From Magallana gigas (taxonomy: Eukaryota), in contig NC_088858.1 of NCBI RefSeq assembly GCF_963853765.1, positions 45,694,001 through 45,758,000 on the forward strand: DNA of 64,000 bases, in the 5' to 3' direction. The translations under genes were made by a program, and so were the position numbers. Of this stretch, positions 47,249 through 50,200 are shown one piece after another (position 1 is the stretch's first letter; every line of letters begins with the position of its first letter). The notes below the pieces were generated by a model that saw only the letters and a program-made list of their open reading frames with translations, was not told the DNA's origin and ran no database searches.

Positions 47249-50200
47249 TTACACGTGAAGTAGAAGATTGTTGGGTCTGATGCGACCAAAGGGAGGCGAC
47301 TCCCACACGGTGATTGTTCCGTCAGATGACGTCATATATAGTCGGTACGAGTCGTTGGTAAACGTCAAACTGAGAAAAATTGAACAAAAGTCAAAATATA
47401 AATACGAGAAAAGTTTTTTTCACTATAGCAAGAAATAAACAAATTAATTAAAACAAATGTCTTTAACAAGAAATTGGCTCAATTCCCTGCTAGAAGTTCT
47501 AAAAAACGCCATCTTATTAAAAATCATAACCTCAGAGTGAAACAATATCAGTTATAATCTTCTCAAAAGTTCAAACATACCATTTAATGCAAAAATTCTA
47601 CTTTGAATTTACTAATTTTCATATCTATGAGAATTATCATAAGATTTATTTTTAAATTGGAATATCATAAATTCATATGCACCCAACATATTTACACTAT
47701 CAACTAATTTTTAAAGTAAAACGTCAATGGCAATATAAAGTTTCAATATAACAGTGTAATACCCTGCAAGTCTGAAGTCCTATAGCTCAGCCTCTGTACA
47801 TGAGACTTTATTTGTATGTTGGTATTTTGTTTGTGACCCCTAAGAGGAAACCAATCTGTTTGATTGGATTTCCTGTACACAAATATGCTTCCTTGTTTCC
47901 AGTAAATCTCGCTTTTGGAAGTGTTTCCAAAGCACACACAAAAACACGATGATTTAACAGGAAATCTATTGAACTCTCTCACAATTCCACACCAATGGGC
48001 AAAAATAGAGACTTGGGTTCTATACGGAGAGAGCCTGATGTCTAATGAAGCGGTAGCTCGCGCTCAGGTTCCACTAAGGACGTGTAAAGACCATGGGGAC
48101 CTGCAGGATATGTTCTGTGTGGACTGTGAGGAATCTATTTGTCTGATCTGTGGCCAGCAGAACCACACGTCTCATGACTGGGGAAGGAGGAATACGATAC
48201 AAGAGCGTGTCAAATCGGAGCTCGCAGAACTGTGTCACCATGTCAGACACAAGAGAGTTCCACTACTGCAGGCGGAAGTCGAGAAAGTCAAGACGTTGAA
48301 AAATGACTATGAGAAAATTTATTTGGAAAAAATGGATAGAATTACGTCACACACTGAAACAGTTGTGAAGAGTTTGCAGAAAATATCAGACGATTTGATA
48401 CGGCAGTGTAAGTTACTAAAATTTCAAAACGAAGACAAACTCGACCAAAAACAGAAAGAAATAGAAACTTTTGTTTTACAGTTTGAATTAAATTTGAAGA
48501 GTGTTGAAGAAAGCAAGTCTGTCAGCTTGTCCAAACTACTTCAGATAAAGAAGCAAGTGCAATCCATACCATATCCAGAAAAATTGAATAAAAAGGACAC
48601 GACTTTGCACCTCATTGATTTCAGAGCGGGAGATGTTAAAGAGAACGTCCTTCAGTCAGTGCTAGGTGAAGTATATCAAACTTGCAACAAAGTGACAGTT
48701 GCCAAAATATTTGAAGCAAAGAAAGGAACAAAGATGATCAAGTACATTTCTCCCATTTCCGAGACTCATGCGTGGTACAGGGAATTCAGGTCTTCGGAAA
48801 ATGTCTTGATCGACATTAACAAGGGATCCACAGAGAGCGCTTGCATGTTTGGAGAGACCCGATCAGATCATATTCCAGACGACTTCATCACTATAAAATC
48901 TGGCGTCAGTATTTACACATGGCATGCTGGCCACTGTGTGATGAAAGTAACTCCCCCAAAAATCAAAGAGAGTGAAGTTACCGCAAATAAAGTTGTAAAA
49001 CTGGCAGATTTGTCCCCATTGTTCCCAGTTGGTATCTGTGCCACTAAAGATGGCAGATTTCTTGTCTCTGCCATTGATACAACAGCGTTCAGTGAAGACA
49101 TCTACACCAGTAGTCAACCAAAGAAAAGTGTCGTCCTAGTTCTATCAGAGAGTGGAAAGACTAAAAAGGTGTTCCAAAATGCAGATGATGATAAGACGCC
49201 ATTGTTCCTCTACCCAACCAGAATGGCAGAAAATACAAACAGTGATATTTGTGTTATTGATAGGACTGGGATGAACAATGGAAAACTAGTTGTTATTTCC
49301 TCCAATGGCAAACTCAAATTCCATTATCAAGGCAATGGTCCCAACCAAGCAGACTTTGATCCAAGGGGGATTTGTTGTGATTCTTCAGGTCATATATTGA
49401 TAAGCGACTGTAACAATAGGTCTGTTCATCTTCTGAATAAGGAGGGAAGTTTTCTGACTTATCTGATCAAAACGGACGAAGAACTGTGGTCAATGTCTCT
49501 GTATATGAACACATTGTGGATTGGTGGTAAAAATGGAATTATTTATGCTTACAAATACCAAGTGGATACTACTTGACTCACCTCAACATTTACTTTTGTC
49601 AAAAGTCATTGTGAAAAATTGTTGTCTCCTCAAGTGATATTTTTTTTGTCTTTGTGAATAAAATTGTGTGAATAACCTTTCGAATGATGTGTGACTATTG
49701 CTGAATCTTGAGAGGAAAGGCTCAATGAATTATTACATGTATTTACCTGATGACAGGTTTGTGCAGGAGATTCTCAGCTTGCAGATCTCTCAGGACTGTG
49801 AGGTCCATACCACTCCATAGTCTGTTGAAAATAAACCAACAGAAGTATTAATTAATTAGCACCAGACAAATCAATAATAAAACATCCTTGGTAATTCCAA
49901 GTTAAAATTAAGTGGTGTTACGGCCATAAAAACCTTATAGCTATTTGATTTGGAAATGAATGAAACACTTTATATGTTTTTCTTTTGGAGAGGAGGAGGT
50001 TGAATATTTTCCATGAAAATAGTGATTAATGAAAATGTAAATTGGCATTTCAAAAGAACTTGATAGCTAACCTAACAACTCCATTGTCCATTCCTCCAGC
50101 CAGTATGTTGACAGACTGACCCTCCGGGGCGTTGGAGAAGGACAGACAGTTGATACTGCTCTCCAGCATGACACTTCTAGCAATGAGTGTGGCGTTGATG

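Follow-up and report, generated by a model that had tools for sequence, protein, structure and literature searches.

An intronless B-box/NHL gene nested antisense in the last LYST intron of true oysters, a probably ordinary host/nested pair

Host genes of nested genes account for 17% of human and 12% of mouse genes (PMC11694760). PMC4860685 cites the case of TIMP, which lies inside a synapsin intron and is conserved there from Drosophila to human, and in Drosophila 2mit lies inside intron 11 of timeless2 in the opposite orientation (PMC3786989). Here we describe such a pair in a window of 64,000 nucleotides of Magallana gigas (C. gigas below; contig NC_088858.1, 45,694,001 to 45,758,000), to whose positions all coordinates refer. 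As in TIMP/synapsin and 2mit/timeless2, a complete protein-coding gene occupies one intron of a larger gene, in this case LYST. We propose that the pair is very probably real but ordinary: a gene inserted in the ancestor of Ostreidae, with both genes functional, kept in place by inertia and later copied out of the intron.

The host gene, on the minus strand of the window, is LYST. The C. virginica LYST protein (3666 aa) is collinear with it from residue 1854 (position 63729) to the last residue (47252), and in a search with an 84-aa LYST exon every named match carried the name lysosomal-trafficking regulator; these matches came from molluscs, vertebrates, an insect and an echinoderm. Pfam placed the end of a BEACH domain in ORF 52573–52953 of the window, and orthologous LYST gene calls of 3716–3762 aa carry PH_BEACH, Beach and WD40. 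A predicted PH-BEACH module followed by a C-terminal WD40 region, a length of ~3600–3900 aa and best reciprocal matches to LYST all point to membership in the LYST family. The end of the gene, all on the minus strand, was delimited with sequence and RNA. A WD40 exon at 50072–50326, upstream of the penultimate one and bounded by RNA joints, served as an orthology probe. The penultimate coding exon (49747–49821, 75 nt, ...LWSGMDL...KPVI) follows an AG acceptor at 49823–49822, reads (x)[24 protein letters not shown] and ends in phase 2, with two bases (AG) of a split codon ahead of a GTAAAT donor; it is supported by the joints 49821|50072 and 47369|49747, and an orthologous 75-nt exon is found in scallop, mussel, pearl oyster and flat oyster. 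The last intron, the host of the nested gene, spans 47370–49746 (2377 bp, GT..AG). The terminal coding exon (47249–47369) starts at 47369 after ttttctcAG, and its first base completes the split Ser codon. It reads [40 protein letters not shown], stops with TAA at 47251–47249 and encodes the C-terminal tail together with the final part of the last WD40 blade; its amino acid identity is 93–98% in S. echinata, C. virginica and C. angulata, and it forms the end of all public LYST proteins of oysters, Pinctada, Mytilus and scallop.

Splicing across this intron was observed directly. The joint 47369|49747, which skips 2377 nt and reads CT..AC on the plus strand (GT..AG on the minus strand), is carried by 42 stranded reads from two RNA runs (14 reads with 11 starts in X21 and 28 reads with 13 starts in X22). 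These reads share their orientation with the LYST joints 49821|50072, 50326|50617 and 50758|50961, and the joint is also present in RNA contigs of X5 and X6. An earlier note, written from the sequence alone, had claimed that an intron splits the LYST C-terminus; the minus-strand junction reads in both stranded runs, together with the two RNA assemblies, confirm this, and the coordinates it gave for the LYST exons, the intron and the nested coding sequence all hold. Its concern that annotation would truncate LYST here was not borne out, as the last exon is present in the public models of C. angulata, C. virginica, S. echinata and O. edulis. Stranded depth on LYST exons is 10–30x, with all reads in one orientation. 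A 3′ UTR at 46291–47248 (minus strand) with alternative ends at ~46775, 46621 and 46291 is supported by stranded depth that begins in the 46800–46999 bin, by RNA contigs that begin at 46621 (X5) and 46291 (X6), and by minus-strand poly(A) signals at 46794, 46632, 46365 and 46292.

The nested gene is a single-exon coding sequence on the plus strand (48038–49576), open over 512 codons, which fills 1539 of the 2377 bp (65%) of the intron and has intact orthologs in four other oysters. RNA junction reads and five oyster genomes support the proposal that a B-box/NHL gene lies antisense in the last LYST intron. A putative promoter end and 5′ UTR occupy 47734–48037 (plus strand), with a TATAAA motif at 47734 and an RNA contig (X6) at 47786–48277 whose depth is 62, versus 9.5 at the intron flank; the motif and the raised depth suggest a transcription start near 47786. 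The 3′ UTR (49577–49685, plus strand) has its only AATAAA at 49657–49662, a signal that would end the transcript ~60–70 bp short of the LYST exon. With these predicted ends (~47786 to ~49685), the nested transcript appears to lie wholly within the intron without exon–exon overlap, and the nested gene sits inside one LYST intron with no exon sequence in common with its host, as in other host/nested pairs. Two poly(A) libraries yielded ~8 nested-sense stranded reads, a smaller number than the LYST-sense reads in that stretch of the intron. RNA contigs, which are unstranded and could include pre-mRNA or DNA, cover the nested gene at 1.6 to 6x the depth of the flanking intron. Evidence that LYST and the nested gene are transcribed as separate units is thus thin for the nested gene, but present. 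A scan of the nested 5′ region with bacterial promoter and terminator models, which do not apply to a eukaryote, gave counts at shuffle level, and Pfam returned no matches for the other long ORFs in the window.

The nested protein consists of a B-box2 (residues 16–46), a coiled coil (~51–158) and a six-bladed NHL propeller (~219–509). Residues 16–46 follow the pattern C-x2-H-x7-C-x7-C-x2-C-x4-H-x2-H, and in a comparison of 11 homologs the B-box2 zinc ligands are invariant, as are core residues of the NHL propeller; the invariant B-box positions are C16, H19, C27, D29, C30, C35, C38, H43 and H46. The Pfam zf-B_box score is 23.8 bits for the nested protein, just below the 24.1-bit cutoff, and 30 bits for its downstream paralog. 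By sequence, the protein has the B-box zinc finger of the TRIM family. A coiled coil after the B-box is predicted by the AF2 model (mean pLDDT 78.9), which shows an unbroken helix over 51–158 and ~24 strands over 219–509, and phmmer gave a weak match to the TRIM3 B-box/coiled-coil structure 8amr (E 0.006). For the C-terminal part, Pfam NHL scored 28.3 bits, above the 20-bit cutoff, phmmer against the PDB returned the NHL domains of TRIM3, TRIM2 and TRIM71 (E 3e-19 to 1e-12), and the best Foldseek matches were TRIM3/TRIM2/Thin NHL domains (TM by target 0.69–0.74) and TRIM71 NHL (0.72–0.75), pointing to the six-bladed NHL β-propeller of the TRIM-NHL subfamily at an identity to solved NHL domains of only ~15–19%. 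The N-terminal RING of the TRIM family is lacking: Pfam found none, the B-box already starts at residue 16, no ATG lies in the reading frame upstream of the coding sequence, RNA contigs are collinear with the genome, and the nested orthologs all begin at the same place. The missing RING predicts that intrinsic E3 ligase activity is probably absent. Brat and Mei-P26-like members show that the TRIM-NHL scaffold can function without a RING. Compared with TRIM2, TRIM3, TRIM32/Thin, TRIM71/LIN-41, Brat and Mei-P26, the nested protein has the same B-box2, long coiled coil and C-terminal six-bladed NHL but neither RING nor filamin domain, and it comes from a lineage-expanded family. The existence of an expanded RING-less B-box/NHL family in oysters, also put forward in the earlier note, was supported here with our genome search as its basis, which scored at least 84 of 1904 candidates in this genome as matches, almost all of them single-ORF. 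In the literature available to us, a search on B-box/NHL or tripartite-motif/NHL expansion in oysters found none.

The same nesting is present in C. angulata, C. virginica, Saccostrea echinata and Ostrea edulis. Public annotations have LYST and the nested gene right in four oysters, both genes being called in C. angulata, C. virginica and S. echinata, and only O. edulis seems to be without a nested gene call; there, an intact 512-aa nested ORF lies in a LYST last intron of ~4.0 kb. Across the five species, in which synonymous sites are saturated, the nested ORF is intact at 512–514 codons with dN/dS of 0.06–0.25, values that indicate a gene kept under purifying selection. In a comparison of one genome per outgroup family, the intron position is identical (KPVI|S) and the intron measures ~175 bp in Pinctada imbricata, ~0.73 kb in Mizuhopecten and ~1.37 kb in Mytilus edulis, with no B-box/NHL match in these LYST loci and their 10-kb flanks. 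The nested gene is thus found in the other oysters examined and absent in Mytilus. The empty short intron of the outgroups, combined with nesting in the oysters, argues that the gene moved, on the oyster-family stem, into an intron that was already there. Short Logan/JGI contigs with P0005, P0006 and P0007 contained no LYST exon, in the case of P0005 because the O. edulis intron is larger. In a synteny check, the downstream bZIP gene of C. virginica had no match in the window or the other loci.

A paralog of 508 aa (43675–45201, plus strand) lies just beyond the LYST 3′ end, tail-to-tail with LYST as had been noted before. It is 99% identical to C. gigas LOC105335664, its protein is 64% identical to the nested protein, and stranded plus-sense reads run from 45200 to ~46600. 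In a protein tree the nested orthologs, this paralog and a third copy (C6:26.4 Mb) are grouped, with 100% support for the group as a whole. The paralog seems to have arisen by later copying in the C. gigas/angulata lineage only, because its dS is 0.90, versus 1.57 to S. echinata and saturation for C. virginica, and because it is absent in other genera.

Based on these data, we propose a history of the locus that is very probable. An intronless, RING-less TRIM-like B-box/coiled-coil/NHL gene would have inserted antisense into an already existing phase-2 intron, the one before the last LYST exon, in the common ancestor of true oysters (Ostreidae), once their line had separated from those of pearl oysters, scallops and mussels. 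LYST still splices cleanly across the insert; the nested ORF has stayed intact under purifying selection and shows low-level transcription on its own strand, from within the intron. By an argument of parsimony, nesting most likely persists through neutral retention, or inertia: exit would require a rearrangement, with risk to an essential host gene, and selection for LYST/nested coupling need not be invoked. A later copying event, of the nested gene or of a close relative, probably placed the paralog just beyond the LYST 3′ end in the C. gigas/angulata lineage. Asian and Atlantic Crassostrea split at least 63 My ago (PMC12021676). Nesting would have been kept for at least that long, and for longer counting back to Ostrea and Saccostrea, a persistence that also fits selection for position.

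Retention of the nesting in five oyster species could mean that the pair acts as a unit, with nested transcription modulating LYST 3′ processing or with shared regulation in haemocytes. We judge this unlikely, together with the routes it would take, namely interference, intron retention and premature polyadenylation. Nested genes can cause host intron retention and cryptic polyadenylation (PMC3192792), host/nested co-expression can raise host transcript diversity (PMC11694760), and LYST-sense reads over the last intron reach ~5–10% of exon depth. However, unspliced pre-mRNA alone would yield such reads, and the nested mRNA appears confined to the intron. Moreover, no intron sequence beyond the nested coding sequence can be aligned between genera, leaving no conserved shared regulatory block visible, and the paralog outside the intron is also intact in C. 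gigas. It has also been considered that the fixed position is itself functional, such that nested transcription, for example in haemocytes under immune challenge, tunes LYST 3′ splicing or polyadenylation, or that the nested protein acts in the LYST lysosome-related-organelle pathway. This is a long shot; if true, the LYST/nested pair would be an oyster-specific regulatory module and not an insertion accident. A literature search on LYST in oyster haemocytes found nothing usable.

The very low nested-sense expression in two stranded libraries and the lack of a public gene call for the O. edulis ortholog could instead indicate that the ORF is no independent gene, being a decaying retrocopy or pseudogene, or a chance opposite-strand reading of an alternative LYST 3′ exon. 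We consider this highly improbable and largely refuted by the intact frame in five species with saturated synonymous sites, the low dN/dS, and the invariant zinc ligands and propeller core; in addition, an in-frame GAA indel polymorphism is tolerated, and the ORF lies opposite the LYST strand with no LYST junction entering it. That LYST normally ends before the nested gene through another terminal exon, leaving 47369–47249 to a minor isoform, is barely conceivable. Supporting evidence was not found, and the RNA junction reads to 47369 refute it: their numbers (14 and 28) are comparable to what the three junctions upstream have in the same runs (7–19 and 18–42), orthologous LYST proteins all end with this exon, and without it the WD40 blade is incomplete.

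Read as an ordinary host/nested pair, mostly already annotated and so far with no sign of mutual influence between LYST and the nested gene, the locus has its main value for annotation and as a dated example of nesting. The oyster LYST C-terminus requires splicing across a resident gene, which public models already represent correctly, and the O. edulis gene set apparently lacks the nested gene. Entry into the pre-existing intron is cleanly bracketed, with the gene present in four oyster genera and absent at the same position in pearl oyster, scallop and mussel, and a later escape copy adjoins the host. The pair can be used as a natural system in which to study whether host 3′ processing is affected by nested genes, although nothing suggests a stronger effect in this one than in hundreds of other nested pairs. 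Compared with LYST/CHS1/beige proteins, the host is the oyster ortholog, of ~3700 aa, with PH-BEACH followed by C-terminal WD40. Its terminal exon structure is like that of LYST in other bivalves, and the last intron is enlarged only in Ostreidae (2.4–4.0 kb vs 0.18–1.4 kb elsewhere) by the gene residing there. In the oyster pair the nested gene is on the strand opposite to its host; as in known pairs, host and nested gene are each transcribed and the nesting is shared by several genera. The oyster pair is restricted to true oysters and, as it postdates their divergence from pearl oysters, is much younger than TIMP/synapsin.

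The C-terminus of LYST is split by its last intron, and that intron holds an antisense B-box/NHL gene. The penultimate LYST exon (49821-49747, minus strand, 75 nt) has its AG acceptor at 49823-49822 and ends at a GTAAAT donor, with its last two bases opening a split codon. The terminal exon (47369-47249, minus strand) is preceded by a pyrimidine-rich tract and AG (47371-47370); its first base completes the Ser codon, and the TAA stop lies at 47251-47249. The intervening intron (47370-49746, minus strand) is 2377 bp long with GT..AG ends (CT..AC on the plus strand), and 65% of it is occupied by a plus-strand ORF of 512 codons starting at the first ATG, 48038, and ending at 49576. 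The earlier note had described both the split C-terminus and the gene lying antisense between the two exons; every one of its coordinates was correct when the exons, donor and ORFs were re-read in the sequence.

RNA evidence was collected for window positions 45000-50999 from two stranded poly(A) runs, used as raw reads (X21 and X22), and from contigs of two further RNA runs (X5 and X6). The predicted minus-strand junction 47369|49747 was found in 14 reads with 11 starts in X21, in 28 reads with 13 starts in X22, and in one contig each of X5 and X6. The first mate lay on the plus strand in all LYST reads and on the minus strand in all reads over the 3' UTR of the paralog downstream of LYST, indicating that the libraries are cleanly stranded. 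Support for this joint is similar to that for the upstream LYST joints 49821|50072, 50326|50617 and 50758|50961 (7-19 reads each in X21, 18-42 in X22). Thus, the splice across the nested ORF is the main LYST form, not a minor isoform.

The identity of the host was examined through its domains and homologs. Pfam places the end of a BEACH domain in the ORF at 52573-52953 (minus strand), and an exhaustive HMMER search with the 84-aa WD40 exon (50325-50074, minus strand) matched full-length proteins of 3600-3900 aa. A lamprey protein and a Logan cluster among them carried no name; all the others, from scallop, abalone, whelk, sea slug, Mya, a bony fish, an insect and a crinoid, bear the name lysosomal-trafficking regulator or LYST-like. 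A second search added Ostrea, Pinctada, Mytilus and vertebrate LYST. Beyond the WD40-exon match, 67-71 residues remain in the full-length homologs, consistent with the 65 supplied by the two terminal exons. Moreover, C. virginica LYST (3666 aa) is collinear with the minus strand of the window, from residue 1854 at 63729 to the last residue at 47252. The named matches and this alignment together indicate that the window covers the 3' half of oyster LYST. X21 and X22 carried different, internally consistent SNP sets across the LYST 3' UTR and WD40 exons (window 47072-47366 and 50079-50221), a sign of the haplotype diversity that is typically high in oysters rather than of RNA editing.

The nested protein has the scaffold of the TRIM family. 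Its B-box (residues 14-47) scored 23.8 bits in Pfam, just below the 24.1-bit cutoff (30 bits in the downstream paralog), and an NHL repeat was also detected. Residues 16-46 fit the B-box2 pattern, with zinc ligands invariant in eleven homologs. Searches of the PDB with phmmer returned the NHL domains of TRIM3, TRIM2 and TRIM71 (E 3e-19 to 1e-12) and, weakly, the TRIM3 B-box/coiled-coil. An AlphaFold2 model (mean pLDDT 78.9) comprises the B-box, one long helix (51-158) and ~24 strands over residues 219-509; its best Foldseek matches in the PDB were the NHL propellers of TRIM3, TRIM2 and Drosophila Thin (TM by target 0.69-0.74), with the TRIM71 NHL further down the list (0.72-0.75). However, the protein lacks the RING of the family: there is no space for a RING before residue 16, no upstream coding exon was found, and the start is the same in all orthologs. 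It is therefore described as a RING-less B-box/coiled-coil/NHL protein.

The B-box/NHL family is large in this genome: a genome-wide six-frame search gave at least 84 scored matches among 1904 candidates, almost all of them single uninterrupted ORFs of ~500 codons. Among the scored matches, close relatives of the nested gene occur at two loci only, the downstream paralog (65% identity) and a copy at 26.4 Mb on C6 (57%), and all others are at most 29% identical over their full length. The C6 copy (G000:C6:26425481-26427013; L006:982-2514) encodes 511 aa and lies on the same chromosome, 19 Mb away. A further related protein, P0007, is 46% identical to the nested protein and comes from the same studies (by run-accession series) as P0005 of O. 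edulis. The C6 copy and P0007 may represent a second old branch of the subfamily and a possible source copy.

Comparison of orthologous introns, a check proposed in the earlier note, revealed the gene in four further oysters and its absence from Mytilus edulis. Outside C. gigas, where intron lengths are approximate (within ~10 nt), the last LYST intron measures about 2.38 kb in C. angulata, 2.69 kb in C. virginica and 2.46 kb in S. echinata, each with a B-box/NHL gene inside, and about 4.0 kb in Ostrea edulis, with an intact 512-codon antisense ORF. It is empty in Pinctada imbricata (about 175 bp), Mizuhopecten yessoensis (about 0.73 kb) and Mytilus edulis (about 1.37 kb), where the penultimate exon has the same 75 nt and the same end, KPVI|S; tblastn with the B-box/NHL protein against these three LYST loci and their 10-kb flanks gave zero matches. 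A short empty intron at the same position in three outgroups indicates that the intron predates the gene, which entered it in the Ostreidae stem. The Saccostrea and Ostrea splits are earlier than that between Asian and Atlantic Crassostrea. One published estimate places the latter at 63.2 Mya (PMC12021676). Between genera, the CDS alone is alignable within the intron. The nested gene is under purifying selection: its pairwise dN/dS ranges over 0.06-0.25, although most comparisons between genera are saturated at synonymous sites. An in-frame GAA insertion polymorphism at window 48505, seen in stranded X22 reads and in X5 and X6 contigs, adds one Glu and accounts for 513-aa and 512-aa alleles; the insertion is also present in C. 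angulata and most Logan-derived proteins.

Transcription of 48038-49576 from the plus strand, also anticipated earlier, was detected, at a very low level in the two stranded libraries: X21 and X22 together gave ~8 plus-sense reads, in the orientation of the paralog. About 25 LYST-sense reads cross the same CDS, which is what unspliced pre-mRNA would give at roughly 5-10% of exon depth. In the unstranded contigs, depth over the nested gene was 62 and 23 vs 9.5 in the flanking intron (X6), and 10.3 vs 6.5 (X5). A raised-depth contig starts at 47786, 46 bp beyond the 3' end of a TATAAA beginning at 47734, and the only AATAAA past the nested stop is at 49657. From these features we infer a transcript of ~1.9 kb that would lie wholly within the intron. 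A perfect palindrome of two inverted CCAAT boxes, CCAATCTGTTTGATTGG (window 47851-47867), precedes the nested ATG by ~170 bp and falls in the putative 5' UTR or promoter; blastn detects no conservation of it at the DNA level between genera.

The paralog (43675-45201, plus strand, 508 codons) lies tail-to-tail beyond the LYST 3' end, as had been noted. In S. echinata, C. virginica and O. edulis, the nested copy stands alone within 10 kb. Moreover, nested gene and paralog in C. gigas differ by a dS of 0.90, below the 1.57 found for the orthologs of C. gigas and S. echinata; against C. virginica, dS is saturated, and the protein tree does not settle the branching order. These data are read most economically as a duplication that took place in the Asian Crassostrea (Magallana) lineage and set a copy down immediately beyond the host gene. 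In C. angulata, the paralog was copied again (L003:5579-7102 and L003:1-774). The LYST-proximal copy is a pseudogene that has lost its start codon (ATA for ATG) and carries one premature stop, and an intact 508-aa copy lies ~6 kb farther from LYST; the pair suggests that a tandem duplication occurred recently and that one of its products is decaying. The convergent 3' ends of paralog and LYST meet at window 46291-46640. Poly(A) signals are found at 46595 and 46604 (plus strand) for the paralog and at 46794, 46632, 46365 and 46292 (minus strand) for LYST, and RNA contigs with the LYST terminal exon begin at 46621 (X5) and 46291 (X6). Use of the distal LYST site would give a 3' UTR overlap with the paralog of up to ~330 nt.

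Most of this arrangement is already in public annotation. The nested protein is present in NCBI and UniRef (C. angulata ortholog XP_052700001.1), its Magallana gigas UniProt entry is named 'Tripartite motif-containing protein 2', and the downstream paralog shares 99% identity with C. gigas LOC105335664. The earlier warning that careless annotation would truncate LYST was not borne out: the public gene models of C. angulata, C. virginica and Saccostrea echinata include a BEACH/WD40 gene (3716-3762 aa) that spans a B-box/NHL gene, itself also called. In the O. edulis public record, no gene is called at L019:76323-77861, where the intact ortholog lies antisense in the LYST last intron; its product is identical to P0005, known only from Logan assemblies. 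A gene model is probably missing here.

Nested genes can disturb splicing and polyadenylation of their hosts (PMC3192792), and the coupling suggested in the earlier note is thus a legitimate idea. Nothing in its support was found at this locus: the nested gene, by its inferred transcript, has no exon overlap with LYST, no conserved noncoding block is visible in the last LYST intron when genera are compared, and the two stranded libraries show very little nested-gene expression. A resident gene in an intron of an essential gene is hard to remove without rearrangement, so that conserved position alone is weak evidence of function. LYST and its nested gene are a textbook host/nested pair, a well-bracketed case of an arrangement that is very common: nested genes are hosted by about 17% of genes in human and 12% in mouse (PMC11694760), and intronic genes make up ~6% of Drosophila genes (PMC3786989). 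Long-conserved nesting is likewise known for TIMP within synapsin, an example cited in PMC4860685.
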